Notes: generated from the sequence alone by a model not told the origin. Positions 1 through 53,469 are shown, numbered from the stretch's first letter. The stretch: DNA of 64,000 nucleotides from Eukaryota sp. TZLM1-RC (GCA_040285825.1 JAUPSS010000004.1:62001-126000); one strand, 5' to 3'. Made by a program: numbers and translations.

Positions 1-337
1 TAAAAACGAGAGGAACAATTTGGTTAATTAAATTTAATTCTTTTAAAATTGAATACTTTGCAATTTTATCAGAATAAGCTTTCGAAAAAGCATCACTCCA
101 ATTATTACCATAACCTCCAACTATGGTAACATCAAAAGCAATTTTAGTTGACGTTTGAAAGCCATCAACACGTAACTGCTTATTTAAACCGAATTTAAAT
201 TCCTTTTCAGATTCAAAATTATTTAATTCGTTAATAAAATTATTTACTTCGTCATGTCTTTGTGTAACCATTCTTGAGACTTTTCTACAATGAAACGAGT
301 GATCTAAGCCAAGGTCTCCATAACCACACAAAGGAAT
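1..337 (-). mobile_element. Partial short REL non-LTR insert (family A), cut by the window edge
   Basis: Same sequence as the inserts at 5454-6004 etc.; ends at the duplicated target ATACGATTTACT (338-349). Confidence 0.9.
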
Positions 338-811
338 ATACGATTTACTGAGGCTCATATAAAGTTCCTAGTTTCGTATATTGACCAATGGTTGTTTATT
401 ACAATCATTGGTCAAATCTTTAAAGTCCATTTTGGGACAATTAATATAACAATTGTGGTGTTAAAGTCCGTGCTATGGTCATTTGAGTAGTCATTGGTAT
501 GATTGGTTGAATGGTCATTGGTATGATTAGGTGAGTTGCATGTAGTCTTTATGTACTAGATGTGATCAACTTGTGATCAAACTTTGTGTGAAATTGGGTG
601 TGAGTAATGTTGGCTATGTGTTACTTGGTCAATACAAACTCATGATTACATTTTCAATTGATTTTGTATAAATTTGAATTAATTGAGTTATTAATTTTTA
701 AACATTAAATTGTAAAAATAGTAAAAAAATCAAAAAGTATACAGATGAATGTTGCAAACTAATAAGACCATTGCTGTAAGTGTAAGAGTATTGTTTTTGA
801 TACGATTTACT

Positions 812-1360
812 TTTATTGAAAATTAAAAAAAACTACTTGAACACTAAAAAAAATACCTACCAACATTGACGATCTTCTCTTCTCTTTTGAAGAATATAAT
901 TAAAAGCACTGTGACATTTAAAGCTATTCTTCAAAATGATACAACTAATTTCATCTGCTACCTCATTCAATCCAAATTGGACAAACAGTATTTTTGTTTT
1001 AGTGTAAAAACCCCCATGAACACTAAAAACGAGAGGAACAATTTGGTGAATTAAATTTAATTCTTTTAAAATTGAATATTTTGCAATTTTATCAGAATAA
1101 GCTTTCGAAAAAGCATCACTCCAATTATTACCATAACCTCCAACTATGGTAAAATCAAAAGCAATTTTAGTTGACGTTTAAAAGCCATCAACACGTAACT
1201 GCCTATTTAAACCAAATTTAAATTCCTTTTCAGATTCAAAATTATTTAATTCGTTAATAAAATTATTTACTTCGTCATGTCTTTGTGTAACCATTCTTGA
1301 GACTTTTCTACATTGAAACAAGTGATCTAAGCCTAGGTCTCCATAACCACACAAAGGAAT
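812..1360 (-). pseudogene. Short family A REL insert with nonsense mutations
   Basis: TSD ATACGATTTACT at 800-811 and 1361-1372. Q>stop at 1178-1180 and W>stop near 966 relative to sister copies. Confidence 0.9.
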
Positions 1361-1882
1361 ATACGATTTACTGAGGCTCATATAAAGTTCCTAGTTTCGT
1401 ATATTGACCAATGGTTGTTTATTACAATCATTGGTCAAATCTTTAAAGTCCATTTTGGGACAATTAATATAACAATTGTGGTGTTAAAGTCCGTGCTATG
1501 GTCATTTGAGTAGTCATTGGTATGATTGGTTGAATGGTCATTGGTATGATTAGGTGAGTTGCATGTAGTCTTTATGTACTAGATGTGATCAACTTGTGAT
1601 CAAACTTTGTGTGAAATTGGGTGTGAGTAATGTTGGCTATGTGTTACTTGGTCAATACAAACTCATGATTACATTTTCAATTGATTTTGTATAAATTTGA
1701 ATTAATTGAGTTTATTAATTTTTAAACATTAAATTGTAAAAATAGTAAAAAAATCAAAAAGTATACAGATGAATGTTGCAAACTAATAAGACCATTGCTG
1801 TAAGTGTAAGAGTATCGTTTTTGATACGATTTACTTTTATTGAAAATTAAAAAAAAACTACTTGAACACTAAAAAAAATTAC

Positions 1883-2920
1883 CTACCAACATTGACGATC
1901 TTCTCTTTTCTTTTGAAGAATATAATTAAAAGCACTGTGACATTTAAAGCTATTCTTCAAAATGATACAACTAATTTCATCTGCTACCTCATTCCATCCA
2001 AATTGGACAAACAGTATTTTTGTTTTAGTGTAAAAACCCCCATGAACACTAAAAACGAGGGGAACAATTTGGTGTATTAAATTTAAATCTTTTAAAATTG
2101 AATATTTTGCAATTTTATCAGAATAAGCTTTCGAAAAAGCATCACTCCAATTATTACCATAACCTCCAACTATGGTAAAAACAAAAGCAATTTTAGTTGA
2201 CGTTTGAAAGCCATCAACACGTAACTGCCTATTTAAACCAAATTTAAATTCCTTTTCAGATTCAAAATTATTTAATTCGTTAATAAAATTATTTACTTCG
2301 TCATGTCTTTGTGTAACCATTCTTGAGACTTTTCTACATTGAAACAAGTGATCTAAGCCTAGGTCTCCATAACCACACAAAGGACATATCACAAATTGTT
2401 CTCCTTGAAGCAATCTCAGATTTATTAGGTATTTAAAGCAATCATCTGAGAACGTGAAATTTTGAGAAATAGGCAAAACTTTCAAACAACAAGATGATTG
2501 ACTGCCACAATTTGAAATAAATTGTAGTCGTTCACATTCTGATAGTTTTTCTTTCAAACGACTCAATTTTTCCTTATAAAATAAATGAGTGATTTGACGT
2601 TGGCAAATTTTAATTCGTTTGTCCCAGATTGAGTCAAAACCAGCAAAAGAAGGTGATAAAGCTGATAGTAAAACCCTATACTGATCACTTGGAATTAAAT
2701 TTGTTAAATCAAGATCACGTACAGCCAAGTATACAGAAACTGAATAGCAAATATGTGCAACTTGGCCCAGATGGAGAAACCCTAATCCACCCAAAGAATG
2801 AGGCAAATAAATAAAATCTAAATTATTTGATTCTTCCAATCCTATTAAGTTGAAATAAGCAACAAATTCTGAAACCCAAAGATGAAAACCCATTCTGGTA
2901 TACGATTTACTGAGGCTCAT
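1883..2920 (-). CDS. 345 aa fusion ORF: MSLSKSY from the repeat + 3' part of a non-LTR retrotransposon (LP..GGLG, CCHC knuckle, REL endonuclease)
   Basis: Insert 1836-2899 lies between TSDs 1824-1835 and 2900-2911. Motifs: LPHSLGGLG, CPLC..H...C, RHD, RVDG, K..KY. The second acidic residue is mutated here (FVFT vs FDVT). Confidence 0.85.
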   Translation of the reverse strand: MSLSKSYTRMGFHLWVSEFVAYFNLIGLEESNNLDFIYLPHSLGGLGFLHLGQVAHICYSVSVYLAVRDLDLTNLIPSDQYRVLLSALSPSFAGFDSIWDKRIKICQRQITHLFYKEKLSRLKEKLSECERLQFISNCGSQSSCCLKVLPISQNFTFSDDCFKYLINLRLLQGEQFVICPLCGYGDLGLDHLFQCRKVSRMVTQRHDEVNNFINELNNFESEKEFKFGLNRQLRVDGFQTSTKIAFVFTIVGGYGNNWSDAFSKAYSDKIAKYSILKDLNLIHQIVPLVFSVHGGFYTKTKILFVQFGWNEVADEISCIILKNSFKCHSAFNYILQKKREDRQCW

Positions 2921-3272
2921 ATAAAGTTCCTAGTTTCGTATATTGACCAATGGTTGTTTATTACAATCATTGGTCAAATCTTTAAAGTCCATTTTGGGAC
3001 AATTAATATAACAATTGTGGTGTTAAAGTCCGTGCTATGGTCATTTGATTAGTCATTGGCATGATTGGTTGAATGGTCATTGGTATGATTAGGTGAGTTG
3101 CATGTAGTCTTTATGTACTAGATGTGATCAACTTGTGATCAAACTTTGTGTGAAATTGTGTGTGAGTAATGTTGGCTATGTGTTACCTGATCAGTACAAA
3201 CTCATGATTACATTTTCAATTGATTTTGTATATATTTGAATTAATTGAGTTTATTAATTTTAAACGTTAAAT

Positions 3273-4413
3273 ATTTAGCAGAGTATTTATGCAAAAGTGC
3301 TTTTATTGGTGGTATGAAAAATTTTCTTTTTGAATGGAAACTTCGTTTTGATCATATTCCTTTGAATGAATCACATCCTTTATTAATTTCTCTTGACAAA
3401 ATGGTGCAAGAACTACCTGTTGATGTTTGGAATAGGAGTTTTCCTTCAAGTTTGCCTACTGTGCCTTCGAGATCTTTCACCAATCTTCATCTTGCTGTTG
3501 TGAAATTACAGAAGTCTGTTCTTATTGGTTTTGAAGACCAGGATTTTTCTAAACGACTTAGTGTGACTAAGATTAATAATCCCGTCTTTGCTGCCTTTTT
3601 ATCAGACATTCAGAACTGTACTAGTTTAATATCTCAGCAACCAAGGCCATTTGGTCTTCACTTAACAAATGAAGCTTGGAAACAAAACATGCGGTTGAGA
3701 TTAGGGATGTATCCAAGTGGTCTTTTGGACAATTCTTATTGTATTTGTAACAAAAAACCTACTGCCAATTTTCGTCATATTGTGAGCTGTAAGAAATTTC
3801 TCCAATATAGGTCAGTTCTTCATAATGCCGTTCGTGATGTGACATATGAGATGTTCAAGTGTTACAATTTTAGTTGCAAAGTAGAACCTTTGTTGAAGCA
3901 TTATAGTGATGATAATCTTTTTAATTCACGTCGAGGTGATTTAATTGCTCCTTTTGTGGATTCCTCTCAAGTTGTTGTTGATTTCACTACAGTTGATCCC
4001 TTTGCTTTGGTTTATCGCGATGATGTTTTACTTAGTAATAATGGTCATTTGAACAAGGCTGAAGATCGTAAGAGAGATAAATATACTGAGATATTAAATG
4101 ATTTAAATAAGAACCTTTATTCGAAGTTTTCGTTTGTTCCTTTTGCCTTTTCGATTTTTGGCAACATTGGACAATCCGCCTTGAATTTCATCAATGATTT
4201 TGGTAATTTATGTCGTTCAAGTGGTAAGAATTTTGCAGAGAATTTATGGAAAAATCGTATCATTTTCGCTTTGTACAGAAGTGTTCCCAAGTACTTGAGT
4301 TTAATGATGTCTAAACTTTATAAGGATTCATCAAGAGTTGGCGTGGAGAATTTAGTTTCTTATGTGTTTTAGTTTTTTTATTTGATTCTTCGTGGAAAAT
4401 GATGAAATAATAA
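3273..4413 (+). mobile_element. 5'-truncated REL non-LTR retrotransposon (family B), ORF open to 4372
   Basis: 13-bp TSD TTAAACGTTAAAT at 3260-3272 and 4414-4426. Motifs: CICNK..H...C, HNAVRD, VEP, RRGDL, VDFTTVD, K..KY, FVPFAFS. Confidence 0.92.
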
Positions 4414-5500
4414 TTAAACGTTAAATTGTAAAAATAGTAAAAAATCAAAAAGTATACAATTGAATGTTGCAAACTAATAAAACAATTGTTGTAAGTGTAA
4501 GAGTATCGTTTTTGATACGATTTACTGAGGCTCATATGAAGTTCCTAGTTTCGTATATTGACCAATGGTTGTTTATTACAATCATTGGTCAAATCTTTAA
4601 AGTCCATTTTGGGACAATTAATATAACAATTGTGGTGTTAAAGTGACGTGCTATGATCATTTGAGTAGTCATTGGTATGATTGGTTGAATGGTCATTGGT
4701 ATGATTTGGTGAGTTGCATGTAGTCTTTATGTACTAGATGTGATCAAATTGTGATCGAACTTTGTGTGAAATTGTGTGTGAATAATGTTGGCTATGTGTT
4801 ACTTGATCAGTACAAACTCGTGATTACATTTTCAATTGATTTTGTATATATTTGAATTAATTGAGTTTATTAATTTTTAAACAATAAATTGTAAAAATAG
4901 TAAAAAAAATCAAAAAGTATACAGATGAATGTTGCAAACTAATGAAACCATTGTTGTAAGTGTAAGAGTATCGTTTTTGATACGATTTACTGAGGCTCAT
5001 ATGAAGTTCCTAGTTTCGTATATTGACCAATGGTTGTTTATTACAATCATTGGTCAAATCTTTAAAGTCCATTTTGGGACAATTAATATAACAATTGTGG
5101 TGTTAAAGTGACGTGCTATGATCATTTGAGTAGTCATTGGTATGATTGGTTGAATGGTCATTGGTATGATTTGGTGAGTTGCATGTAGTCTTTATGTACT
5201 AGATGTGATCAAATTGTGATCAAACTTTGTGTGAAATTGGGTGTGAATAATGTTGGCTATGTGTTACTTGATCAGTACAAACTCATGATTACATTTTCAA
5301 TTGATTATATATATTTGAATTAATTGAGTTTATTAATTTTTAAACAATAAATTGTAAAAATAGTAAAAAAATCAAAAAGTATACAGATGAATGTTGCAAA
5401 CTAATAAAACCATTGCTGTAAGTGTAAGAGTATCGTTTTTGATACGATTTACTTTTATTGAAAATTAAGAAGAAACTACTTGAATACTGAAAAAAACTAC

Positions 5501-6025
5501 CTACCAACATTGACGATCTTCTCTTTTCTTTTGAAGTATATAATTAAAAGCACTGTGGCATTTAAAGCTACTCTTCAAAATGATACAACTAATTTCATCT
5601 GCTACCTCATTCCATCCAAATTGGTCAAACAGTATTTTTGTTTTAGTGTAAAAACCCCCATGAACACTAAAAACGAGAGGAACAATTTGGTTAATTAAAT
5701 TTAATTCTTTTAAAATTGAATACTTTGCAATTTTATCAGAATAAGCTTTCGAAAAAGCATCACTCCAATTATTACCATAACCTCCAACTATGGTAACATC
5801 AAAAGCAATTTTAGTTGACGTTTGAAAGCCATCAACACGTAACTGCTTATTTAAACCGAATTTAAATTCCTTTTCAGATTCAAAATTATTTAATTCGTTA
5901 ATAAAATTATTTACTTCGTCATGTCTTTGTGTAACCATTCTTGAGACTTTTCTACAATGAAACGAGTGATCTAAGCCAAGGTCTCCATAACCACACAAAG
6001 GAATATACGATTTACTGAGGCTCAT
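5501..6025 (-). CDS. 174 aa REL endonuclease-only fusion ORF (short family A insert 5454-6004)
   Basis: TSDs 5442-5453 and 6005-6016. RHD..RVDG..FDVT..K..KY intact. ATG supplied by the repeat unit. Confidence 0.8.
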   Translation of the reverse strand: MSLSKSYIPLCGYGDLGLDHSFHCRKVSRMVTQRHDEVNNFINELNNFESEKEFKFGLNKQLRVDGFQTSTKIAFDVTIVGGYGNNWSDAFSKAYSDKIAKYSILKELNLINQIVPLVFSVHGGFYTKTKILFDQFGWNEVADEISCIILKSSFKCHSAFNYILQKKREDRQCW

Positions 6026-6527
6026 ATAAAGTTCCTAGTTTCGTATATTGACCAATGGTTGTTTATTACAATCATTGGTCAAATCTTTAAAGTCCATTTT
6101 GGGACAATTAATATAACAATTGTGGTGTTAAAGTCCGTGCTATGGTCATTTGATTAGTCATTGGCATGATTGGTTGAATGGTCATTGGTATGATTAGGTG
6201 AGTTGCATGTAGTCTTTATGTACTAGATGTGATCAACTTGTGATCAAACTTTGTGTGAAATTGGGTGTGAGTAATGTTGGCTATGTGTTACTTGGTCAAT
6301 ACAAACTCATGATTACATTTTCAATTGATTTTGTATAAATTAGGAATTAATTGAGTTATTAATTTTTAAACATTAAATTGTAAAAATAGTAAAAAAATCA
6401 AAAAGTATACAGATGAATGTTGCAAACTAATAAGACCATTGCTGTAAGTGTAAGAGTATTGTTTTTGATACGATTTACTTTTATTGAAAATTAAGAAGAA
6501 ACTACTTGAATACTGAAAAAAAACTAC

Positions 6528-7052
6528 CTACCAACATTGACGATCTTCTCTTTTCTTTTGAAGTATATAATTAAAAGCACTGTGGCATTTAAAGCTACTC
6601 TTCAAAATGATACAACTAATTTCATCTGCTACCTCATTCCATCCAAATTGGTCAAACAGTATTTTTGTTTTAGTGTAAAAACCCCCATGAACACTAAAAA
6701 CGAGAGGAACAATTTGGTTAATTAAATTTAATTCTTTTAAAATTGAATACTTTGCAATTTTATCAGAATTAGCTTTCGAAAAAGCATCACTCCAATTATT
6801 ACCATAACCTCCAACTATGGTAACATCAAAAGCAATTTTAGTTGACGTTTGAAAGCCATCAACACGTAACTGCTTATTTAAACCGAATTTAAATTCCTTT
6901 TCAGATTCAAAATTATTGAATTCGTTAATAAAATTATTTACTTCGTCATGTCTTTGTGTAACCATTCTTGAGACTTTTCTACAATGAAACGAGTGATCTA
7001 AGCCAAGGTCTCCATAACCACACAAAGGAATATACGATTTACTGAGGCTCAT
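6528..7052 (-). CDS. 174 aa REL endonuclease-only fusion ORF (insert 6480-7031)
   Basis: TSDs 6468-6479 and 7032-7043; same motifs. Confidence 0.8.
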   Translation of the reverse strand: MSLSKSYIPLCGYGDLGLDHSFHCRKVSRMVTQRHDEVNNFINEFNNFESEKEFKFGLNKQLRVDGFQTSTKIAFDVTIVGGYGNNWSDAFSKANSDKIAKYSILKELNLINQIVPLVFSVHGGFYTKTKILFDQFGWNEVADEISCIILKSSFKCHSAFNYILQKKREDRQCW

Positions 7053-7552
7053 ATAAAGTTCCTAGTTTCGTATATTGACCAATGGTTGTTTATTACAATC
7101 ATTGGTCAAATCTTTAAAGTCCATTTTGGGACAATTAATATAACAATTGTGGTGTTAAAGTCCGTGCTATGGTCATTTGATTAGTCATTGGCATGATTGG
7201 TTGAATGGTCATTGGTATGATCAGGTGAGTTGCATGTAGTCTTTATGTACTAGATGTGATCAACTTGTGATCAAACTTTGTGTGAAATTGGGTGTGAGTA
7301 ATGTTGGCTATGTGTTACTTGGTCAATACAAACTCATGATTACATTTTCAATTGATTTTTGTATAAATTTGAATTAATTGAGTTATTAATTTTTAAACAT
7401 TAAATTGTAAAAATAGTAAAAAAATCAAAAAGTATACAATTGAATGTTGCAAACTAATAAAACCATTGCTGTAAGTGTAAGAGTATCGTTTTTGATACGA
7501 TTTACTTTTATTGAAAATTAAGAAGAAACTACTTGAATACTAAAAAAACTAC

Positions 7553-8077
7553 CTACCAACATTGACGATCTTCTCTTTTCTTTTGAAGTATATAATTAAA
7601 AGCACTGTGGCATTTAAAGCTATTCTTCAAAATGATACAACTAATTTCATCTGCTACCTCATTCCATCCAAATTGGTCAAACAGTATTTTTGTTTTAGTG
7701 TAAAAACCCCCATGAACACTAAAAACGAGAGGAACAATTTGGTTAATTAAATTTAATTCTTTTAAAATTGAATACTTTGCAATTTTATCAGAATAAGCTT
7801 TCGAAAAAGCATCACTCCAATTATTACCATAACCTCCAACTATGGTAACATCAAAAGCAATTTTAGTTGACGTTTGAAAGCCATCAACACGTAACTGCTT
7901 ATTTAAACCGAATTTAAATTCCTTTTCAGATTCAAAATTATTGAATTCGTTAATAAAATTATTTACTTCGTCATGTCTTTGTGTAACCATTCTTGAGACT
8001 TTTCTACAATGAAACGAGTGATCTAAGCCAAGGTCTCCATAACCACACAAAGGAATATACGATTTACTGAGGCTCAT
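7553..8077 (-). CDS. 174 aa REL endonuclease-only fusion ORF (insert 7507-8056)
   Basis: TSDs 7495-7506 and 8057-8068; same motifs. Confidence 0.8.
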   Translation of the reverse strand: MSLSKSYIPLCGYGDLGLDHSFHCRKVSRMVTQRHDEVNNFINEFNNFESEKEFKFGLNKQLRVDGFQTSTKIAFDVTIVGGYGNNWSDAFSKAYSDKIAKYSILKELNLINQIVPLVFSVHGGFYTKTKILFDQFGWNEVADEISCIILKNSFKCHSAFNYILQKKREDRQCW

Positions 8078-8577
8078 ATAAAGTTCCTAGTTTCGTATAT
8101 TGACCAATGGTTGTTTATTACAATCATTGGTCAAATCTTTAAAGTCCATTTTGGGACAATTAATATAACAATTGTGGTGTTAAAGTCCGTGCTATGGTCA
8201 TTTGATTAGTCATTGGCATGATTGGTTGAATGGTCATTGGTATGATCAGGTGAGTTGCATGTAGTCTTTATGTACTAGATGTGATCAACTTGTGATCAAA
8301 CTTTGTGTGAAATTGGGTGTGAGTAATGTTGGCTATGTGTTACTTGGTCAATACAAACTCATGATTACATTTTCAATTGATTTTGTATAAATTTGAATTA
8401 ATTGAGTTATTAATTTTTAAACATTAAATTGTAAAAATAGTAAAAAAATCAAAAAGTATACAGATGAATGTTGCAAACTAATAAGACCATTGCTGTAAGT
8501 GTAAGAGTATCGTTTTTGATACGATTTACTTTTATTGAAAATTAAGAAGAAACTACTTGAATACTAAAAAAAACTAC

Positions 8578-9102
8578 CTACCAACATTGACGATCTTCTC
8601 TTTTCTTTTGAAGTATATAATTAAAAGCACTGTGGCATTTAAAGCTACTCTTCAAAATGATACAACTAATTTCATCTGCTACCTCATTCCATCCAAATTG
8701 GTCAAACAGTATTTTTGTTTTAGTGTAAAAACCCCCATGAACACTAAAAACGAGAGGAACAATTTGGTTAATTAAATTTAATTCTTTTAAAATTGAATAC
8801 TTTGCAATTTTATCAGAATAAGCTTTCGAAAAAGCATCACTCCAATTATTACCATAACCTCCAACTATGGTAACATCAAAAGCAATTTTAGTTGACGTTT
8901 GAAAGCCATCAACACGTAACTGCTTATTTAAACCGAATTTAAATTCCTTTTCAGATTCAAAATTATTTAATTCGTTAATAAAATTATTTACTTCGTCATG
9001 TCTTTGTGTAACCATTCTTGAGACTTTTCTACAATGAAACGAGTGATCTAAACCAAGGTCTCCATAACCACACAAAGGAATATACGATTTACTGAGGCTC
9101 AT
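8578..9102 (-). CDS. 174 aa REL endonuclease-only fusion ORF (insert 8531-9081)
   Basis: TSDs 8519-8530 and 9082-9093; same motifs. Confidence 0.8.
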   Translation of the reverse strand: MSLSKSYIPLCGYGDLGLDHSFHCRKVSRMVTQRHDEVNNFINELNNFESEKEFKFGLNKQLRVDGFQTSTKIAFDVTIVGGYGNNWSDAFSKAYSDKIAKYSILKELNLINQIVPLVFSVHGGFYTKTKILFDQFGWNEVADEISCIILKSSFKCHSAFNYILQKKREDRQCW

Positions 9103-9603
9103 ATAAAGTTCCTAGTTTCGTATATTGACCAATGGTTGTTTATTACAATCATTGGTCAAATCTTTAAAGTCCATTTTGGGACAATTAATATAACAATTGT
9201 GGTGTTAAAGTCCGTGCTATGGTCATTTGATTAGTCATTGGCATGATTGGTTGAATGGTCATTGGTATGATTAGGTGAGTTGCATGTAGTCTTTATGTAC
9301 TAGATGTGATCAACTTGTGATCAAACTTTGTGTGAAATTGGGTGTGAGTAATGTTGGCTATGTGTTACTTGGTCAATACAAACTCATGATTACATTTTCA
9401 ATTGATTTTGTATAAATTTGAATTAATTGAGTTATTAATTTTTAAACATAAAATTGTAAAAATAGTAAAAAAATCAAAAAGTATACAGATGAATGTTGCA
9501 AACTAATAAGACCATTGCTGTAAGTGTAAGAGTATCGTTTTTGATACGATTTACTTTTATTGAAAATTAAGAAGAAACTACTTGAATACTGAAAAAAAAC
9601 TAC

Positions 9604-10641
9604 CTACCAACATTGACGATCTTCTCTTTTCTTTTGAAGTATATAATTAAAAGCACTGTGGCATTTAAAGCTACTCTTCAAAATGATACAACTAATTTCA
9701 TCTGCTACCTCATTCCATCCAAATTGGTCAAACAGTATTTTTGTTTTAGTGTAAAAACCCCCATGAACACTAAAAACGAGAGGAACAATTTGGTTAATTA
9801 AATTTAATTCTTTTAAAATTGAATACTTTGCAATTTTATCAGAATAAGCTTTCGAAAAAGCATCACTCCAATTATTACCATAACCTCCAACTATGGTAAC
9901 ATCAAAAGCAATTTTAGTTGACGTTTGAAAGCCATCAACACGTAACTGCCTATTTAAACCAAATTTAAATTCCTTTTCAGATTCAAAATTATTTAATTCG
10001 TTAATAAAATTATTTACTTCGTCATGTCTTTGTGTAACCATTCTTGAGACTTTTCTACATTGAAACAAGTGATCTAAGCCTAGGTCTCCATAACCACACA
10101 AAGGACATATCACAAATTGTTCTCCTTGAAGCAATCTCAGATTTATTAGGTATTTAAAGCAATCATCTGAGAACGTGAAATTTTGAGAAATAGGCAAAAC
10201 TTTCAAAAAACAAGATGATTGACTGCCACAATTTGAAATAAATTGTAGTCGTTCACATTCTGATAGTTTTTCTTTCAAACGACTCAATTTTTCCTTATAA
10301 AATAAATGAGTGATTTGACGTTGGCAAATTTTAATTCGTTTGTCCCAGATTGAGTCAAAACCAGCAAAAGAAGGTGATAAAGCTGATAGTAAAACCCTAT
10401 ACTGATCACTTGGAATTAAATTTGTTAAATCAAGATCACGTACAGCCAAGTATACAGAAACTGAATAGCAAATATGTGCAACTTGGCCCAGATGGAGAAA
10501 CCCTAATCCACCCAAAGAATGAGGCAAATAAATTAAATCTAAATTATTTGATTCTTCCAATCCTATTAAGTTGAAATAAGCAACAAATTCTGAAACCCAA
10601 AGATGAAAACCCATTCTGGTATACGATTTACTGAGGCTCAT
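9604..10641 (-). CDS. 345 aa long family A fusion ORF with intact CCHC and REL motifs (insert 9556-10620)
   Basis: TSDs 9544-9555 and 10621-10632. CPLC..HLFQC, RHD, RVDG, FDVT, KIAKY. Confidence 0.85.
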   Translation of the reverse strand: MSLSKSYTRMGFHLWVSEFVAYFNLIGLEESNNLDLIYLPHSLGGLGFLHLGQVAHICYSVSVYLAVRDLDLTNLIPSDQYRVLLSALSPSFAGFDSIWDKRIKICQRQITHLFYKEKLSRLKEKLSECERLQFISNCGSQSSCFLKVLPISQNFTFSDDCFKYLINLRLLQGEQFVICPLCGYGDLGLDHLFQCRKVSRMVTQRHDEVNNFINELNNFESEKEFKFGLNRQLRVDGFQTSTKIAFDVTIVGGYGNNWSDAFSKAYSDKIAKYSILKELNLINQIVPLVFSVHGGFYTKTKILFDQFGWNEVADEISCIILKSSFKCHSAFNYILQKKREDRQCW

Positions 10642-10816
10642 ATAAAGTTCCTAGTTTCGTATATTGACCAATGGTTGTTTATTACAATCATTGGTCAAAT
10701 CTTTAAAGTCCATTTTGGGACAATTAATATAACAATTGTGGTGTTAAAGTCCGTGCTATGGTCATTTGATTAGTCATTGGCATGATTGGTTGAATGGTCA
10801 TTGGTATGATTAGGTC

Positions 10817-10998
10817 TTTATTGAATTTCTAAAAGAAAAAGAACGAAAAGACTATAAAAGTAAATGAAAAAAACATAAACTACCAAAACCTACGAGCTTC
10901 ATGAATTCTTTGAAGAATAGAATTAAATGCTTGATTACATCTAAAACTATTTTTCTGAATTATACAACTAATTTCACTACAAAGCTCAATCCAACCAA
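10817..10998 (-). mobile_element. 3' end of a sibling REL family, terminating the array
   Basis: Minus strand reads LGWIELCSEISCIIQKNSFRCNQAFNSILQRIHEARRFW*, aligning to family A GWNEVADEISCIILKNSFKCHSAFNYILQKKREDRQCW*. Ends in AATAAA. Confidence 0.85.
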
Positions 10999-11019
10999 GT
11001 TCGAATCCCACCACACGCA
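10999..11019 (+). pseudogene. 3' fragment of a tRNA gene (T-loop to discriminator)
   Basis: G-TTCGAAT-CCCAC-CACACGC-A parses as T-loop + 5-nt T-stem strand + 7-nt acceptor strand + discriminator. The 5' part is absent. Confidence 0.55.
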
Positions 11020-11021
11020 CA

Positions 11022-12500
11022 TTGTCTAGTGCCTCTCCATTGAGAGGTGCTAATTCTAGTGATCACGTCAGCAATGACGTGATCGATTCTCGTAGTGAGC
11101 TTCGGCTCGCTACAAATAACCACTGTGGTGGGAAGGGGGGTTTTTGCCTTGTGTCCCTTTGTGTCAGTCGCCAAAATTCTAATCAAATTTCTGATGATCC
11201 CTTTTCTGCTAATATTGAAAATTTGGACCAAAATTCTAATCAAATTTCTCAAAATTCAAGTGACCCTAATTTAATTTGTCAAAATCTGAGAGAGAGAGAG
11301 AAGTGGTGTAAATAAGTTCTGTTGCTTTGTGTCGCTCTGTCCCAGAACTGAACCGTTCTCTAAGCGGTCTGGGTTGACAAGGCATTTGATGAAAAAGCAT
11401 CCTGATGTCAGCATTGATGTTTTAAAAGACAATGGATACACAAGATGTAGCTGCTCTGACATCATTTCTGTAGAAGGCATTGGGATGCATATAACCAAGA
11501 AAGGCTGTACGTTTTCTTTAAGTGATTCACTCAATAATTCAGAGAGTTCTCCTCTTCCTTCTGAAGACTCTCCCATTCAAATGTATCATCAACCCATTAA
11601 CCCAAGCCAACGTTATGGACTTGTGTTTGGGTATCAGCAGGGTCCTCTTGTGGCTGAACCTGATTCAGATGTTTCCATCCATTTGTTTGTTCTTCTGGCC
11701 TTGATAGTGCTCCTGTTGTCCCTATTGACGCTAATGATGATGGTGCTGAATTTACTCCATTCATATTTCCTGGTGACCAGGAAAACATACCTGAATCGAA
11801 TGCTTCCATTGATACTAATGTTAATGTAAATCCCTTGGAGATTTACACAGATGGATCATTTCTTAAAAAAAGTAGTAAAGCTGGCTTTGGTGGCTTCTAT
11901 ACTTTCAAAGATAAGCGATTCGAAATTTATGGCCCATCACGGCACAACACCCATAACGCAGCTGAGTTTGAAGCTGTCTTGATGTCCATTAAATCGTTAG
12001 TGTTGCTCTCTGACTGTCCACAACACATTATCATTTTTTCTGACAGTAGCCTTGTCGTTGATTCTTTTAACCTAGAAGCACCCTTAAAAAACCCTACTGT
12101 CAAGAGAATCCGCTGCCAAATCAAGGATCTCATCAATAGTTCTCGTTTTAGACTTTTCTCCTTCTCTTTTAAAAAAGTGTTGGCACACTCAGACAATGCT
12201 AATAATAATGTTGCTGATGTTTTAGCAAAACGTGGCGCTAATGGCTCTGAATGTTCACTGCTGAAGTATTTAAGAACACGTTATCATGTTCTTGAAGGCC
12301 CTATACCACTTTGTTCATTACCACCTGACCACTGTGAACAGATTGCTGATAGTGCTCCCCTTGACTCGTCCATTTTAGAAAAATCACACAATTGTCCTAT
12401 CTGTCCCAGTTTCTTTTCCAAAGCAAGATCCTTATGCTGCCATATTGATACGCACCACTCCTCTATAGACACTGACACATTACACATTAATAATCTGGTT
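11022..12500 (+). mobile_element. 5' part of a non-LTR element (family C): C2H2 zinc finger - RNase H - C2H2 zinc finger, frameshifted, RT missing
   Basis: CFVSLC..HLMKKH finger. Frameshifts at the (AG)n run ~11290 and at ~11680. Homologous to the 5' end of the RT-bearing element at 17549. Confidence 0.75.
11027..11131 (+). ncRNA. Structured 5' leader of element C (three strong hairpins)
   Basis: 11-bp stem 11027-11052 (2 G-U). Perfect 10-bp stem with GCAA loop 11061-11084. 9-bp stem with C(UUCG)G loop 11092-11113. The wobble pairs favour the + strand. Confidence 0.6.
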
Positions 12501-12527
12501 CAAACTTCCAACTACTGGAAAATCTAA
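11835..12527 (+). CDS. RNase HI domain followed by a C2H2 zinc finger
   Basis: IYTDGS, THNAAEFEA, IFSDS and AHS..N..ADVLAKRGA give the D-E-D-D tetrad; then CPICPSFF..LCCHIDTHH. Confidence 0.9.
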   Translation: MEIYTDGSFLKKSSKAGFGGFYTFKDKRFEIYGPSRHNTHNAAEFEAVLMSIKSLVLLSDCPQHIIIFSDSSLVVDSFNLEAPLKNPTVKRIRCQIKDLINSSRFRLFSFSFKKVLAHSDNANNNVADVLAKRGANGSECSLLKYLRTRYHVLEGPIPLCSLPPDHCEQIADSAPLDSSILEKSHNCPICPSFFSKARSLCCHIDTHHSSIDTDTLHINNLVQTSNYWKI

Positions 12528-13050
12528 TGAACTTGCTGGTAGACTAGTCGACTATATTTTTGCTGAAGATATGTCCAGTTACAGACGCATTCGCGGATTA
12601 CCACTCATTGATACTAATCACTGTTTTTGGATCTGGTACAACAGCGAAAGATTGAACGTATTGCTAACTTACGTATGCCGAATGATTGTTGGAGATTGAA
12701 AGGACGCAGAGTCCGTAGTTATCCTCACATCAAACGTAACGGTAAAACCCATTACATAAGAGTGCTTGCTGACTCATATATATATTCAGCTGATGCATGG
12801 GTTGGAAGAAGTTTGTGGAAATAATGAGGCAAGTCATCTCTGTGGAAAGGATTGGTGTATTAATCCAAACCACATCATTTTTGAATCAAGCTGGTATAAT
12901 TCCACACGAAACTATTGCCATTGCCTTGTTCAATCTGCTGCTAAATGTATTCACAAGCCCAAATGTTTTAGATGTATTCAAATCAGTCGTGAACAATTCT
13001 TGATGACTGTATTTGGTTCAACACAAAAACAGTATAGTGATTTGGTTTAA
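12500..13050 (+). pseudogene. His-Cys box (I-PpoI-like, His-Me finger) homing-type endonuclease, copy 1, frameshifted
   Basis: DCWRL..YPHIK..THIY..EASHLCGKDWCINPNHIIFES..N..RNYC..C.H.P.C. Confidence 0.8.
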
Positions 13051-13118
13051 ATTGATTATAAAAATAGTGTGATGGTCATTAAAAGAGTTGAAACTATCGA
13101 TCAATTTGTTCATTTCAT

Positions 13119-13721
13119 ATGGTTGTTCTTCATCCGAAAGCAACCAATCCTTCATATGTGAAGAAACGTAAGGCATCTTCACACGCTTCTCCTCCTGCCA
13201 AATTGCCTACAAAAGTGACTTCTCCTACCTCACTTTATACTGTCTCTGCAGCAGAATGCTCCTCCTTGTCTTCCCCAACGGTTCAACCCAGTGATCAACC
13301 CAGTGATGAGATTGTGTGTGAACATACTGCTGATTCTGTATCTGTTCCTGCAATTGAACCCAAAACTGATACTCCTACAAAAGTGCCTTATTCAGAAAAA
13401 CGGGCACGCCAAAAGGCGTTCACATCAACTGGCTTTTCATCAAATCAGTTACGCAGAACACGTGAACGTCTGATGGCAAGTTCACAATCGGAGCAAGAAC
13501 AACCAAAAATGCTCGTAACATGCACTGGTGAAGGAAAGAATCGACAGTACTTCATCACAATGCATGATGAATTTGAAATGGATCATTTTCTTGCCTCTGA
13601 CAAATGGATTGTTAATCCTGATGTGTATAGAAGAAGAGGACAGAAAGGTCCATTTACATCCATCAAAGATTTTTGTCAAGAAACAGAAACAGATGATGGT
13701 TATGTCAGTCAAGAGATTTAG
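13119..13721 (+). CDS. Hypothetical 200 aa Ser/Pro-rich protein with an NLS-like KKRK
   Basis: Intact ATG ORF. Copies at 15025 (1-nt insertion) and 16793 (truncated). No recognised domain. Confidence 0.45.
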   Translation: MVVLHPKATNPSYVKKRKASSHASPPAKLPTKVTSPTSLYTVSAAECSSLSSPTVQPSDQPSDEIVCEHTADSVSVPAIEPKTDTPTKVPYSEKRARQKAFTSTGFSSNQLRRTRERLMASSQSEQEQPKMLVTCTGEGKNRQYFITMHDEFEMDHFLASDKWIVNPDVYRRRGQKGPFTSIKDFCQETETDDGYVSQEI

Positions 13722-13953
13722 TTGGTTGTTTGTCCAGATGAATAGAATTTGAATTGTTTTGTAATTGTTTTGACTTATAAATCGATGTTTTTCGTAATAA
13801 TTTTTTCCTTATTTCATGAATTTCCTATAAAATCTGGTAATAACACATAAAATACAAGGCATTATTTGCAATATTTTTGCTAAATTCATTTTGTATTTTT
13901 TGTTATAGGAAACGGAATTTTCAATCATTCTGATTAATATAGATGACGGATTT

Positions 13954-13978
13954 TCGGGTTCGATTCCCAGTGGGGTCA
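13954..13978 (+). pseudogene. 3' tRNA fragment
   Basis: GGG-TTCGATT-CCCAG-TGGGGTC-A; no recognisable D-arm or acceptor 5' strand upstream. Confidence 0.45.
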
Positions 13979-14405
13979 TATATTTTCTATGTCAGTACAT
14001 AAAACTAGCAGGCTTTTGCTGCCAAATCAAGGATCTCATCAATAGTTCTCGTTTTAGACTTTTCTCCTTCTCTTTTAAGAAAGTGTTGGCACACTCAGAC
14101 AATGCTAATAATAATGTTGCTGATGTTTTAGCAAAACGTGGCGCTAATGGCTCTGAATGTTCACTGCTGAAGTATTTAAGAACACGTTATCATGTTCTTG
14201 AAGGCCCTATACCACTTTGTTCATTACCACCTGACCACTGTGAACAGATTGCTGATAGTGCTCCCCTTGACTCGTCCATTTTAGAAAAATCACACAATTG
14301 TCCTATCTGTCCCAGTTTCTTTTCCAAAGCAAGATCCTTATGCTGCCATATTGATACGCACCACTCCTCTATAGACACTGACACATTACACATTAATAAT
14401 CTGGT

Positions 14406-14956
14406 TCAAACTTCCAACTACTGGAAAATCTAATGAACTTGCTGGTAGACTAGTCGACTATATTTTTGCTGAAGATATGTCCAGTTACAGACGCATTCGC
14501 GGATTACCACTCATTGATACTAATCACTGTTTTTGGATCTGGTACAACAGCGAAAGATTGAACGTATTGCTAACTTACGTATGCCGAATGATTGTTGGAG
14601 ATTGAAAGGACGCAGAGTCCGTAGTTATCCTCACATCAAACGTAACGGTAAAACCCATTACATAAGAGTGCTTGCTGACTCATATATATATTCAGCTGAT
14701 GCATGGGTTGGAAGAAGTTTGTGGAAATAATGAGGCAAGTCATCTCTGTGGAAAGGATTGGTGTATTAATCCAAACCACATCATTTTTGAATCAAGCTGG
14801 TATAATTCCACACGAAACTATTGCCATTGCCTTGTTCAATCTGCTGCTAAATGTATTCACAAGCCCAAATGTTTTAGATGTATTCAAATCAGTCGTGAAC
14901 AATTCTTGATGACTGTATTTGGTTCAACACAAAAACAGTATAGTGATTTGGTTTAA
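14406..14956 (+). pseudogene. His-Cys box endonuclease, copy 2 (preceded by an RNase H C-terminal fragment, 14018-14433)
   Basis: Same translation as copy 1. Confidence 0.8.
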
Positions 14957-15860
14957 ATTGATTATAAAAATAGTGTGATGGTCATTAAAAGAGTTGAAAC
15001 TATCGATCAATTTGTTCATTTCATATGGTTGTTCTTCATCCGAAAGCAACCAATCCTTCATATGTGAAGAAACGTAAGGCATCTTCACACGCTTCTCCTC
15101 CTGCCAAATTGCCTACAAAAGTGACTTCTCCTACCTCACTTTATACTGTCTCTGCAGCAGAATGCTCCTCCTTGTCTTCCCCAACGGTTCAACCCAGTGA
15201 TCAACCCAGTGATGAGATTGTGTGTGAACATACTGCTGATTCTGTATCTGTTCCTGCAATTGAACCCAAAACTGATACTCCTACAAAAGTGCCTTATTCA
15301 GAAAAACGGGCACGCCAAAAGGCGTTCACATCAACTGGCTTTTCATCAAATCAGTTACGCAGAACACGTGAACGTCTGATGGCAAGTTCACAATCGGAGC
15401 AAGAACAACCAAAAATGCTCGTAACATGCACTGGTGAAGGAAAAGAATCGACAGTACTTCATCACAATGCATGATGAATTTGAAATGGATCATTTTCTTG
15501 CCTCTGACAAATGGATTGTTAATCCTGATGTGTATAGAAGAAGAGGACAGAAAGGTCCATTTACATCCATCAAAGATTTTTGTCAAGAAACAGAAACAGA
15601 TGATGGTTATGTCAGTCAAGAGATTTAGTTGGTTGTTTGTCCAGATGAATAGAATTTGAATTGTTTTGTAATTGTTTTGACTTATAAATCGATGTTTTTC
15701 GTAATAATTTTTTCCTTATTTCATGAATTTCCTATAAAATCTGGTAATAACACATAAAATACAAGGCATTATTTGCAATATTTTTGCTAAATTCATTTTG
15801 TATTTTTTGTTATAGGAAACGGAATTTTCAATCATTCTGATTAATATAGATGACGGATTT

Positions 15861-15885
15861 TCGGGTTCGATTCCCAGTGGGGTCA
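15861..15885 (+). pseudogene. 3' tRNA fragment (duplicate of 13954-13978)
   Basis: Identical sequence. Confidence 0.45.
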
Positions 15886-16066
15886 TATATTTTCTATGTC
15901 AGTACATAAAACTAGCAGGCTTTTGCTGCCAAATCAAGGATCTCATCAATAGTTCTCGTTTTAGACTTTTCTCCTTCTCTTTTAAGAAAGTGTTGGCACA
16001 CTCAGACAATGCTAATAATAATGTTGCAGATGACACTAGTCATTTGCGAGAGAGAGATTTGGACTT

Positions 16067-16724
16067 TTGCCTGTACCGGTATGTTTGAAAAGAGCAGCTG
16101 ATTTCTTCAACCCTGCATGGCATGCTGGAATTTTGCATCTGTTAATCAAAAGATTGAATCAAAAGTTGCCCATCAAACTTCCAACTACTGGAAAATCTAA
16201 TGAACTTGCTGGTAGACTAGTCGACTATATTTTTGCTGAAGATATGTCCAGTTACAGACGCATTCGCGGATTACCACTCATTGATACTCAATCACTGTTT
16301 TTGGATCTGGTACAACAGCGAAAGATTGAACGTATTGCTAACTTACGTATGCCGAATGATTGTTGGAGATTGAAAGGACGCAGAGTCCGTAGTTATCCTC
16401 ACATCAAACGTAACGGTAAAACCCATTACATAAGAGTGCTTGCTGACTCATATATATATTCAGCTGATGCATGGGTTGGAAGAAGTTTGTGGAAATAATG
16501 AGGCAAGTCATCTCTGTGGAAAGGATTGGTGTATTAATCCAAACCACATCATTTTTGAATCAAGCTGGTATAATTCCACACGAAACTATTGCCATTGCCT
16601 TGTTCAATCTGCTGCTAAATGTATTCACAAGCCCAAATGTTTTAGATGTATTCAAATCAGTCGTGAACAATTCTTGATGACTGTATTTGGTTCAACACAA
16701 AAACAGTATAGTGATTTGGTTTAA
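16067..16724 (+). pseudogene. His-Cys box endonuclease, copy 3, with a longer N-terminus
   Basis: Open from 16067 to YPHIKRNGK, then one +1 shift into the SHLC..C.NP.H..E domain. Lacks the 1-nt deletion seen in copies 1-2. Confidence 0.8.
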
Positions 16725-17548
16725 ATTGATTATAAAAATAGTGTGATGGTCATTAAAAGAGTTGAAACTATCGATCAATTTGTTCATTTCATATGGTTGT
16801 TCTTCATCCGAAAGCAACCAACCCTTCATATGTGAAGAAACGTAAGGCATCTTCACACACTTCTCCCCCTGCCAAATTGCCTACAAAAGTGACTTCTCCT
16901 ACCTCACTTTATACTGTCTCTGCAGCAGAATGCTCCTCCTTGTCTTCCCCAACGGTTCAACCCAGTGATCAACCCAGTGATGAGATTGTGTGTGAACATA
17001 CTGCTGATTCTGTATCTGTTCCTGCAATTGAACCCAAAACTGATACTCCTACAAAAGTGCCTTATTCAGAAAAACGGGCACGCCAAAAGGCGTTCACATC
17101 AACTGGCTTTTCATCAAATCAGTTACGCAGAACACGTGAACGTCTGATGGCAAGTTCACAATCGGAGCAAGAACAACCAAAAATGCTCGTAACATGCACT
17201 GGAGTTTTTACTTTGCAATGTTTTTTGAAAGACATTACAATGTTTATTTGTGTTCAAAAAGTAAGTTCGATAATCATTTGGTTATCGAAGTATGGTAAGT
17301 CACATGTGAAAATTGTGTAAGTTGTGAGGCTCCTAAAGTTTTCGTAAAATCTTGCGAAGCAAGGAAGGGAATTAATGCGTCCTAATTAATGCAGCCTATC
17401 CAGAATACGGGTAATATTCAAACAAGGTCAAGATTTGAAAATGAACAACCTTCCTTAGTTGGCATTATGAATATGCTGAAATTCCACTGGCAATACGCAA
17501 TGCCAGGAAAGACACTTCAAAAACAACTAAGATCTGGCGAACTCCCGA

Positions 17549-20500
17549 ACGCTACAAATAACCACTGTGGTGGGAGGGGGGGGGGTTGTCCTTTTTCTCA
17601 AAATTTAGGTGATCCTAATTCAAATTTTCAAAATTTAAATCAAAAAAGTGGTGTAAACAAGTTCTGTTGCTTTGTGTCGCTCTGTCCCAGAACTGAACCC
17701 TTCTCTAAGCGGTCTGAGTTGACAAGACACTTGAAGAAAATGCATCCTGATGTGAGCACTGATATCCTGAAAAATAATGGATACATGAGATGCAGTTGCA
17801 CAGACATCATTTCTGTTGAAGGCATTGGGATGCATGTAACCAGGAAAGGCTGTTCGATTCCTGTCAGTGATCTACTTGATAATTCAGAGAGTTCACCGCT
17901 TCCCTCTGAAGACTCTCCCATTCAAATGTATCATCAACCCATTAACCCAAGCCAACGTTATGGACTTGTGTTTGGGTATCAGCAGGGTCCTCTTGTGGCT
18001 GAACCTGATTCATATGGTCATGTTGGTCACTACAGAAATCAAATGGCAGACAAGCTGGCAAATATCGGTGCCCTAGGAAACACAAGTCCGAACATGAAAC
18101 AACTCACTCCCTCAAAGTTAAGCCAACGAAGACCGCCTAAACCAATATCCATCATGAATCCCATAACCTTCTCACAAGTTGGAAACGTTCCTGACAGTTG
18201 TTCTAAAAACATATGTTCATTTTGTGATGACGATTTTGAAAGATCACGGGACCTCTGCTCACATCTTAAAGAAAACCACTCCGCCCTTACACAGGATGAA
18301 CTGTTACTGAATCAATTTTGTAGATGTCCATGTTGCCAAAACATATTTACAACAAGGGGATTTGATATTCATTGGAATTCCCAGCACCAAGTCCCTCAAG
18401 AACACTTGATTCCAGAAATTTCAGATAACACAATGATTGAGCTCACACGACGTTTTGGTTCGCTGAATTACACAAGATTGAAAAGCAAAGTGTCTTGGAA
18501 ATATGCCATTGATTATATCTCAAATAACACAACTATTTCACAAGAACAAAAATGCCGTTACCTTTTGCTACTCCCAATAGTTTGCCTAAAAATTAACAAA
18601 GGCTCTTACATTGTAAATTTAATTCAATTCATATCGAACATTCAATCAATCAACACAGGATCAGACTCATCACAAGTGATTGACTCCATGCTTTGCAAAA
18701 CCTTTATACTTTAAATTGAGTTCAATTAATGATAAATTAAACTTTAGAGTTGGTTCATTTCGGTAAGGCGATGCCTTTACTCGAACACGATGTTACCCCA
18801 TTTCAATAAATCAAAGAAAAGATCACCGAGTAACTTCAAAAATTGCATCCATCTGGAGAAGTTGCTGATATCGATCCAGGTTCGCCTGAGATCGAGTTAT
18901 TTATTGAAGATGTAACTGGCGCTCTTAGAACAATGTGCACTGCTTCTTCCGGTGGTCCCACAATGTGAACGAAGAAGTTGATTCCTTCGGGAGCTTCGAT
19001 GATATGATTTGGTATATCTCGAAGGTACTTCATAATGGTCCTCAAGACGAAAGTCAAGAGGTTCTTGTTGAGGTCCTTTTAAATTCTCGTCTAGTACCCA
19101 TCCCCAAAAACGACGGTCATAAGTAAGACCTTTGGCCGTCGGAGAACTGTTCTACCGGATAAACGCCAAGGCTATACTCCGAAAGCATGACCCAAAAAAA
19201 TTAACAATCAATGGACAATTTGGTGTTAAAATCCCTTGTGGAGCTGAAGCCATTATCCATTCTGTAAGACAATCTACCACCACAGATCGATTTTCTCATT
19301 TGTTGAAAATTGATATAGCGAATGCTTTTAATAGTATTCATCAATGTGAAATTTTGAAAAATTTGAAGAACTTAGCGCCAGAAATGGTACCGTCCTTTCT
19401 AAAAATTTACGGAAGGAGCTCTAAGCTTTTCCATTCGGAAGGAAGCATTGAGTCATCATGTGGTGTGAAACAGGGAGACCCACTTGGTCCGTATGTCTTT
19501 GCCGAAGGCTTAGATGATATCATGTCCAAAATGAGTTCTGAATTCCCAGATGCCATGTCTCTAGGTTATCTGAACAATGAAGCAGTTCTTTGCACTAGCA
19601 AAGAACAATGTACTAATTTCCTTGGCTTGTTGTCGAAACTAAGTGCCCCTGTTGGATGCAACGTCAACCGTGAGAAATACGAGATAGTTCAACTATCAAA
19701 CAACACACCCTTTGACATCTTAGGATGTCCTATCGGTTCCCTATCCCCAAATCAGAGTGATTTAAAAGTTAAAGAGCTAGAAAAGTGTCTAGTAAGCTTA
19801 GAGAAACTTCCTTTGCAATATCGCTTGTTACTTTTAAGAATGTGTATTCAACCCAAACTAGGATTCCTTGCTCGCGCTTGGACCCCTGACCTGGCAAATT
19901 CACTTTTGGAAAAGTTTCATGAATTGGTCTGTAATTGCATAAAAAATTGGTTCAAGACGGAAGTTCTCTTTGATGGGTTGGTCTCCTTGCCAATGAACTG
20001 GGTCGGCCTCGGAATGACAGATTAAAGTAAGGTTAGCGTTCTTGCCAATGCAAGTAGTCTAGCAAGTAGTATTGTTGTGGTAAATAGGTATAAAATTAAA
20101 ATTATGGACCTATATACAGAATCAACAATATCTCGTCTAGATTATCTGTTAGGTAGTTTCGTTGACCCCAAACATGTTAGTTCATTCCTAGAACACAGCA
20201 TTGCTGATCTAAGAAGAATGCAAAAATTTGAGACACGTATCTACCACTCCGCGAAGCAACTCTTCGATGAATATACGGACTATTTCAAAAAGCCAGCAAT
20301 GTCTTCAGAGGTGGTTCTTTTTCCAGAAGAGTGCAAAGCCAGCAATGTATCAGCGATATTTAGAACTCTCAGACATGAGGTTGAGCTGCAATTAACGCCT
20401 GAGTGTCACAGGTGGTTAACAGTTGTTTCTACTGAAAGACAATTGAGACTAGACGATAATGCTATGATGAGCGGAGTAGGAAGAAGACTCATGCATACCA

Positions 20501-38832: not shown

Positions 38833-39095
38833 CTGCCTTTTCCTCTCTTTCGAGCGACGAGTTCTGGAAGCTCTAGTCACAGGAGGTGAACTAATGGAAT
38901 TATTACGCTTCTTGGGAGGAGCGGATTTAGTACGGTGACGTGCTTTTGAAGTCTTGATAAAGTCTTTATACGCGGCAGTATTTTGGACTGTAGACACATG
39001 CTCAGTGGTGATCTCTTTTCCAGGCCATTGCACTTGGTAAAAGTCACCGTCCTGACTGAGCACTTTTTCAATGATGTGTTCTTCGACATCACCTG
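38827..39095 (-). pseudogene. Chromodomain-like integrase tail, frameshifted from pol
   Basis: GDVEEHIIEKVLSQDGDFYQVQWPGKEITTEHVSTV..AYKDF fits the chromo pattern E.IL...Y.V.W.G...T.E. Confidence 0.7.
38833..38850 (-). other. Polypurine tract
   Basis: Minus strand AAAGAGAGGAAAAGGCAG abuts the TG of the 3' LTR. Confidence 0.85.
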
Positions 39096-53460: not shown

Positions 53461-53469
53461 CCCAGATTA

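Follow-up and report, generated by a model that had tools for sequence, protein, structure and literature searches.

Target site of a retrotransposon in a tandem array

Why does one and the same 12-bp site, in unit after unit of a tandem repeat, hold the end of a retrotransposon? The question is raised by the first 10,815 bp of a 64,000-nucleotide stretch of DNA (JAUPSS010000004.1:62,001-126,000 in assembly GCA_040285825.1), and this whole stretch is called the window below. The source, TZLM1-RC, is the type isolate of Skoliomonas litria, a haloalkaliphilic free-living metamonad (PMC11603281). Its genome was assembled from Nanopore reads at 41x with Illumina polishing, and the genome paper does not mention retrotransposons or ribosomal DNA (rDNA) (PMC11316075). 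We hold with high confidence that the inserted element, here called family A, is a site-specific retrotransposon without long terminal repeats (non-LTR) that encodes a restriction-like endonuclease (RLE) with a C-terminal CCHC motif. Its full form, about 3.8-4 kb, would carry RNase H, reverse transcriptase (RT) and nuclease, and the window array arose by amplification.

The repeat unit is about 463-465 bp long and its copies are 95-99% alike; searching the window, we found no occurrence of it outside the array. The 12-mer ATACGATTTACT occurs 17 times, always on the plus strand and always within 338-10632, and shuffled sequences give 0 occurrences. Printing the context of each occurrence, we observed three junction states: unit, 12-mer and insert 3′ end (TTTATTGAAAA...); insert 5′ end, 12-mer and unit; and an uninterrupted sequence. 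A first-pass annotation of the window had described eight of the ten junctions as carrying a minus-strand retroelement 3′ end flanked by the duplicated 12-mer, two junctions as empty, and two insert lengths with fixed 5′ junctions. The junction contexts bear out each of these points. The eight occupied junctions hold the 3′ end of a 5′-truncated, minus-strand family A copy between the duplicated 12-mers. The sites at 4515 and 4980 are both uninterrupted, as expected of the pre-insertion state, and both empty units carry one distinct haplotype. The inserts are 549-552 or 1064-1065 bp long, in two classes only, each with one fixed 5′ junction, ...CGTAT/ATTCCTTTG and ...CGTAT/ACCAGAATG (element strand; the slash marks the junction or nick here and below).

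The array is ordered as short, short, long, a unit bearing another element (family B), two empty units, four short and long. Family B sits in unit 3 (plus strand, 3273-4413), and a different element, family C, interrupts the array at 10815. The array extends at least 4.5 kb beyond the window start, and this upstream stretch comprises about 7 empty units and a single insertion of another element. The features of the window array are listed below.

1..337, minus: family A short copy S0, incomplete because it runs past the window start; left target duplication 224 bp before position 1
338..811, plus: spacer unit U1, 12-mer at both ends
812..1360, minus: family A short copy S1, 549 bp; second haplotype, common to L2; one stop in the open reading frame (ORF)
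1361..1835, plus: spacer unit U2
1836..2899, minus: family A long copy L2, 1064 bp; open ORF of 345 amino acids through the ATG of the flanking unit
2900..3272, plus: 5′ part of spacer unit U3; its last bases (3262-3272) are the family B target duplication AAACGTTAAAT
3273..4413, plus: family B element, a 5′-truncated retrotransposon with CCHC and restriction-like endonuclease, sense to the unit
4414..4526, plus: 3′ part of spacer unit U3, in which the B duplication recurs (4416-4426), followed by the 28S-tail-like segment
4440..4554, plus: 28S 3′-tail-like segment of the unit, positions 3276-3401 of 3401 in LSU_rRNA_eukarya
4515..4526, plus: empty target site, pre-insertion state
4515..4979, plus: empty spacer unit U4, distinct haplotype
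4980..4991, plus: empty target site, pre-insertion state
4980..5453, plus: spacer unit U5, left junction empty
5454..6004, minus: family A short copy S3, 551 bp; 174-amino-acid ORF from the unit ATG
6005..6479, plus: spacer unit U6
6480..7031, minus: family A short copy S4, 552 bp
7032..7506, plus: spacer unit U7
7507..8056, minus: family A short copy S5, 550 bp
8057..8530, plus: spacer unit U8
8531..9081, minus: family A short copy S6, 551 bp
9082..9555, plus: spacer unit U9
9556..10620, minus: family A long copy L7, 1065 bp; 345-amino-acid ORF; mosaic
10621..10815, plus: spacer unit U10, cut at unit position 196
10816..10999, minus: family C 3′ end, at the unit position that the upstream family C copy also occupies

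Family A joins the 12-mer at the same nucleotide in five arrays

To gather further family A copies, we followed the annotated gene products in the single 90% protein cluster to which the window ORFs belong. We examined 22 copies, of which 18 are at the site (17 in five arrays, and one at locus L012) and four are off-site, that is, outside any unit (loci L003, L006, L009 and L011). The five arrays lie on four contigs. They are the window with its upstream part, L004 (start of contig 7), L005 (contig 13), L007 (contig 11) and L008 (contig 4, about 25 kb from the window and in opposite orientation to it). Among their 81 junctions, 17 are occupied and 62 are empty, and most of the empty ones keep an intact 12-mer.

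All 17 array copies and the L012 copy share an identical 3′ junction, ...TTTTCAATAAA/AGTAAATCGTAT. The 5′ ends fall into eight classes, as follows.

About 550 bp: window, 6 copies; 12-bp duplication at the 5′ junction
672 bp: L008, 2 copies; 12 bp plus ACAGTA
817 bp: L007, 2 copies; 9 bp
1065 bp: window, 2 copies; 12 bp
1065 bp: L004, 1 copy; 10 bp plus TCC
1262 bp: L005, 2 copies; 8 bp
1346 bp: L005, 1 copy; 12 bp plus AA
1414 bp: L005, 1 copy; 12 bp
Near full length: L012, 1 copy; the 5′ flank is not the unit

Since the 3′ junction is invariant while the 5′ junctions are variable and partly filled, the copies point to repeated target-primed reverse transcription (TPRT) and not to crossover or deletion. 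We also considered the short form of the window as a deletion derivative of the long form and rejected it, as one deletion end must then coincide exactly with the duplication boundary. Independent truncations at the 12-mer, together with a full-length RT-bearing copy there, had been proposed beforehand as support for target specificity; the eight 5′-end classes in five arrays and the RNase H-RT-nuclease copy at L012 provide both.

A scatter of family A over unrelated sites, which the first-pass annotation had named as the opposite outcome, was not what we saw. Only 4 of the 22 copies are off-site, and they lie at sites resembling the nick site. The copies at L003, L009 and L011 are flanked by duplications of their own, 9-14 bp long (AGCATCTGAACA, AGTAAACACTCT(CC) and AGCAAAGTG), and the flank of the L006 copy is AGTAAATCT. 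All four show C/AG-Y-A-A-A (YC/AGYAAA) at the position of the first nick, or TTTRCT/GR on the priming strand. This agreement suggests that about 8 bp around the nick may be read directly, and with four sites it is a lead and not a defined motif. The differences between family A copies of different arrays are mostly synonymous, with a ratio of nonsynonymous to synonymous rates (dN/dS) of 0.15-0.4. Such low values between arrays fit descent from functional master copies that had already diverged.

The target lies in a spacer subrepeat of the rDNA

Performing a permissive Rfam search (161 nt), we found that window 4440-4554 matches the eukaryotic large-subunit (LSU) ribosomal RNA (rRNA) model over positions 3276-3401 of 3401, with 23 bits and an E-value of 5e-4. 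The aligned stretch extends to the very 3′ end of the model, and the terminal hairpin stays paired, with compensatory pairs. An unbiased search of 1081 nt returned only a 53-nt core of one unit (E 0.085). At the gathering threshold Rfam gave no match in the 64-kb window, rRNA genes included. The 12-mer corresponds to LSU model positions of about 3361-3372, which puts the first nick about 29 nt before the LSU end.

The surroundings of the other arrays also lead to the rDNA. On contig 13 (overlapping views L005 and L010), the array stands between a 28S gene and an 18S-5.8S-28S cluster and is oriented as the rRNA genes are. The L008 array is upstream of an 18S gene, the L007 array adjoins an 18S fragment, and the window array is about 37 kb from the inverted 18S of L008. 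The partial unit that stands last before the 18S stops just past the 28S-tail-like segment. From the match to the LSU tail and this context, we take the unit to be a subrepeat of the rDNA intergenic spacer that carries a 28S-tail-like segment. The target had been called unrecognised in the first-pass annotation, and that part of its description falls away with the Rfam match and the contig 13 context.

All family A insertions are antisense to the rRNA genes. The at-site copies observed are all in spacer subrepeats and 0 are in a genuine 28S. The 28S at L005/L010 is cut at LSU model position of about 3001 (L005 20172/20173, equal to L010 12377) by the 3′ end of another antisense, nuclease-bearing element. 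The remainder of this 28S is missing, and nested elements stand there before the spacer array. Two exact scans of metagenomes, with 30-nt and 20-nt stretches across the target, gave no match.

The family A protein is that of an RLE retrotransposon

The minus-strand ORF of family A is 345 amino acids long in the long copies. Pfam gave no match for it, and it aligns with the C-termini of RT-bearing proteins. Invariant positions of this alignment are C179, C182, H191 and C195 of the CCHC motif, the RH histidine H206 and the glutamate E224, while the second aspartate, D247, is nearly invariant. Using the PD-(D/E)XK-type motif definitions of the R2 endonuclease, which were mapped biochemically (PMC4838377), we find the VDG of family A opposite the (R)PD/RGD motif and DKIAKY opposite K..KY. 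L2 deviates at the second catalytic Asp, with FVFT in place of FDVT.

The upstream domains are found in copies outside the window. The RT ORF of the L003 copy matches Pfam RVT_1 (E 1.2e-19). At L012, a 1051-codon ORF (annotated as a 1048-amino-acid gene) contains RNase_H and RVT_1, and the nuclease ORF and the family A 3′ end come after it; this copy is about 3.8-4 kb long and joins the 12-mer at its 3′ side. The window copies have no RT and thus could not move autonomously. A homologue search with family C returned 7 distant proteins at 23-29% identity, and an Atlas search gave generic RVT_1 clusters only. Family A shows the hallmarks of TPRT: it lacks LTRs, its 3′ end is fixed, and its copies include 5′-truncated forms and carry target-site duplications.

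Judging from the anatomy of the junctions, the rRNA-sense strand would be nicked after ...ATTTACT. The nicked 3′ hydroxyl would then prime reverse transcription of an element RNA that ends ...CAAUAAA (...UUUUCAAUAAA) and has no poly(A) tail. A cut of the second strand 12 bp away would produce the 12-bp duplication. Frequent early stops of reverse transcription may give the varied 5′ ends, which show duplications of 8-12 bp and 0-6 additional bases. R2 is co-transcribed with 28S. Family A, being antisense to the rRNA genes, would not be co-transcribed with rRNA and would probably need its own promoter or antisense transcription of the spacer.

Occupied units were amplified and homogenised

The short copies of the window differ by 0.4-0.7%. 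S0 and S3-S6 are 0-3 nt apart, with a spacing of 1024-1027 bp. A second haplotype is made up of S1 and L2, and L7 is mosaic, its 5′ part being like S1/L2 and its 3′ part like S3-S6. The layout short-unit-long-unit is present twice, at 812-3270 and at 8531-10815. When the shared 545 bp are compared, copies of one array group together, irrespective of their truncation class.

The window array consists of two insertions (about 550 and 1065 bp) that were copied together with their host units and then underwent gene conversion, and its higher-order repeat of about 1025 bp was made by unequal crossover of occupied units. The amplification of occupied units had been expected on either of two readings, a target-specific family with an unrecognised target or one to two insertions multiplied by crossover. 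The near-identity of S0 and S3-S6 at a period of about 1025 bp and the mosaic L7 agree with that expectation. As for the choice itself, both processes were at work, and only the word "unrecognised" had to be dropped.

Alternative explanations

Could the pattern have arisen without any target specificity, from one or two chance insertions into a satellite that were spread by unequal crossover or ectopic exchange and later trimmed by deletions? Occupied units were indeed amplified, copies do cluster by array, and the 1065-bp truncation point is present on two contigs. However, this course would have to yield eight 5′-end classes with differing duplications and filler behind an invariant 3′ junction, and each deletion would have to end inside the 12-bp duplication. 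It also leaves aside the off-site copies, with their own 9-14 bp duplications at look-alike nick sites, and the dN/dS below 0.4 between arrays. We regard it as contradicted by these observations and extremely improbable. An over-expansion of a shorter array by the Nanopore/Flye assembly, which would make the copy number in the window an artefact, is very unlikely. It draws on the nature of the data (a long-read assembly, short-read polished, 41x Nanopore; PMC11316075) and on the difficulty of counting near-identical 1025-bp repeats. Yet S3-S6 and U6-U9 each have private substitutions, beyond changes in homopolymer length, the layout is ordered and non-periodic, and comparable arrays exist on four contigs. 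More room is left for the view that the unit is an ordinary satellite in the spacer, with a chance match to the LSU 3′ end and a target not derived from 28S, which we consider unlikely. The 23 bits are far under the Rfam gathering score of 50, the unbiased search matched the core in one of two units at E 0.085, and the RNA fold of the target segment is no better than that of shuffles. Against chance stand the match to the exact model end in the orientation of the rRNA genes, the compensatory pairs in the terminal hairpin and the last partial unit before the 18S, which stops just after the segment.

The target-specific reading of family A has its own weak points. Three truncation classes of L005 are identical over the last 545 bp and have one stop codon in common; gene conversion or a single defective source blurs the independent descent of these classes. 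The number of units in the window is that of the assembly. The copies come from one protein cluster, and the sample is biased towards annotated ORFs. The only near-full-length copy, L012, has lost single nucleotides at two places between RT and nuclease, and the sequence on its 5′ side is not that of the unit. An AlphaFold2 model of the 345-amino-acid ORF, built on an 11-row alignment, has a mean predicted local distance difference test score (pLDDT) of 46, too low for a fold search, although the order of its secondary structures is compatible with a restriction-like endonuclease. A genuine 28S 3′ end was not found in the fetched loci, as the 28S of L005/L010 stops at about 3001 and L008 ends within the 18S. 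Homology to the 28S tail therefore stands on a weak covariance-model match together with the genomic context.

A possible role for the truncated copies

The target-specific insertion of family A leaves a further question, whether the truncated copies do anything in the array. An antisense-strand ATG of the unit (ATGAGCCTCAGTAAATCGTAT) stands at window 2900-2920 and 6005-6025, at the equivalent junctions and at L008 8849-8875, and the products begin MSLSKSY. This ATG is in frame in three of the eight classes, which is within chance. The RT-less nuclease ORFs that use it may be expressed and under selection, nick the spacer target and thereby drive recombination and copy-number change of the array; we judge this distinctly unlikely. 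In its favour, the ORFs are open in 6 of the 7 complete window copies and also in L004 and one L005 copy (L005d). The ATG is in frame in the 550, 672 and 1065 classes, those found amplified, and L7 against L2 gives a dN/dS of 0.40. In contrast, a catalytic Asp is missing from L2, the ORF of S1 contains a stop, and one stop is common to three L005 copies (L005a-c). Low dN/dS is explained by descent from active masters plus gene conversion, and with 13 differences only, the in-situ test has no power. The spacer subrepeats, each bearing a 28S-tail copy, might also be a large set of harmless landing pads that absorb a retrotransposon specific for the 28S tail and thereby spare the functional 28S genes. 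Even taken jointly, the landing pads and the expressed, pad-nicking nucleases that would drive recombination and copy number are unlikely. Were the latter true, the element would be a driver of recombination and copy-number change in spacer arrays.

Relation to known site-specific elements

Family A resembles R2 and the other R elements of rDNA in the order of its domains, in which RT is followed by CCHC and a PD-(D/E)XK endonuclease with RH and K..KY (PMC4838377; PMC4640811). Like R2, it inserts by TPRT at one nucleotide of an rDNA sequence and leaves 5′-truncated copies with variable 5′ junctions. The best Protein Data Bank matches of its sister family C are R2 proteins (E about 1e-8), and in the N-terminal part of family C Pfam finds RNase_H and nothing else, where strict R2 elements have zinc-finger and Myb DNA-binding domains. 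Unlike R2, family A uses a site about 29 nt from the LSU 3′ end and not the canonical R2 site. It is also antisense to the rRNA genes, has its at-site copies in spacer subrepeats with none seen in genuine 28S, places RNase H ahead of RT and makes a 12-bp duplication. In site and orientation family A departs from the R2 clade in the strict sense, whose insertions are sense and at the canonical 28S site.

Genie-1 of Giardia lamblia has a C-terminal restriction-like endonuclease. This metamonad non-LTR element is reported to insert site-specifically in a chromosomal tandem DNA repeat (Burke et al. 2002, as summarised in PMC1950533). When the two are compared by description only, family A differs in that its target repeat is identifiable as an rDNA spacer subrepeat. 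CRE1/CRE2/SLACS/CZAR and NeSL/Utopia are RLE non-LTR elements whose targets are tandem multicopy RNA genes (PMC4640811). Compared likewise by description, their targets (spliced-leader, U2 and tRNA genes) differ from that of family A. The 1025-bp compound period with near-identical neighbours is like that of higher-order satellites formed from transposon-bearing units; unlike in such satellites, the insert is present through site-specific integration and not by chance. Family A is a known kind of element at a new target site, unusual in being antisense, in its spacer-copy habitat and in having RNase H ahead of RT.

RLE site-specific retrotransposons are the main natural model of how a DNA address is read, and they are being made into tools for gene insertion. 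Family A adds to them a new address (the region of the 28S terminal helix), a new host lineage (a free-living metamonad), the antisense orientation, which bars it from relying on Pol I transcription, and an RNase H before the RT. Different positions of one 465-bp unit serve at least three families (A, B and C), and together with the off-site motif they offer a natural series on how target choice is encoded and how it changes. The array also displays an rDNA spacer rebuilt into a higher-order repeat by its occupied unit.

Other elements and genes nearby

Family B is about 25% identical to family A in the nuclease region. At L007 it has two copies, at about 4644-7469 and 12923-15958, with 98-99% protein identity; both are antisense at unit position of about 362 and have one 3′ junction, and one of them carries RT. 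Family B thus uses another position of the 465-bp unit, and in the window it may lie away from its usual site.

Families C and A share 50-58% protein identity. Family C is found in three places at unit position of about 185-196, in the part of the unit that is not rRNA-like: at window 10816-10999 (minus), at L002 (1374-517 bp upstream of the window) and at L004. The L004 copy (8984-12778) is full length and intact, with two long ORFs in one frame that encode RNase H, RT and nuclease. The last 39 codons of the window copy are 97% identical to it.

Past the array, window 10999-20870 (plus) holds one or more plus-strand elements, with an RNase H ORF at 11835-12527 (Pfam 2e-15) and an RT ORF at 19132-20025. 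A segment of about 1.9 kb occurs three times in the window, with a doubled TCAACCCAGTGA at 13283, 15189 and 16957. The pol of a Ty3/gypsy-type LTR retrotransposon (protease, RT, RNase H and integrase) is at 38877-42836 (minus). The 700-amino-acid ORF upstream of it (43051-45153, minus) has no Pfam match, and the stretch has 45-48% G+C compared to about 30-33% around it. A dispersed repeat of about 520 bp, with 94-97% identity, is present at no fewer than five loci (window 59067-59584, L012 6000-6517, L006, L009 and L011); the L012 copy stops about 100-200 bp before the family A ORF begins.

On the same contig, L008 1-539 is an 18S at about 19.7-20.2 kb of JAUPSS010000004.1, inverted relative to the window array, and an LTR retrotransposon (RVT_1, rve) lies at L008 1421-3957, between this 18S and its spacer array. 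Ordinary host genes follow past the transposon-rich stretch of the window, namely those for a 4Fe-4S ferredoxin-domain protein (50718-51713, plus) and a RING plus Sel1-repeat protein (53407-55119, plus).

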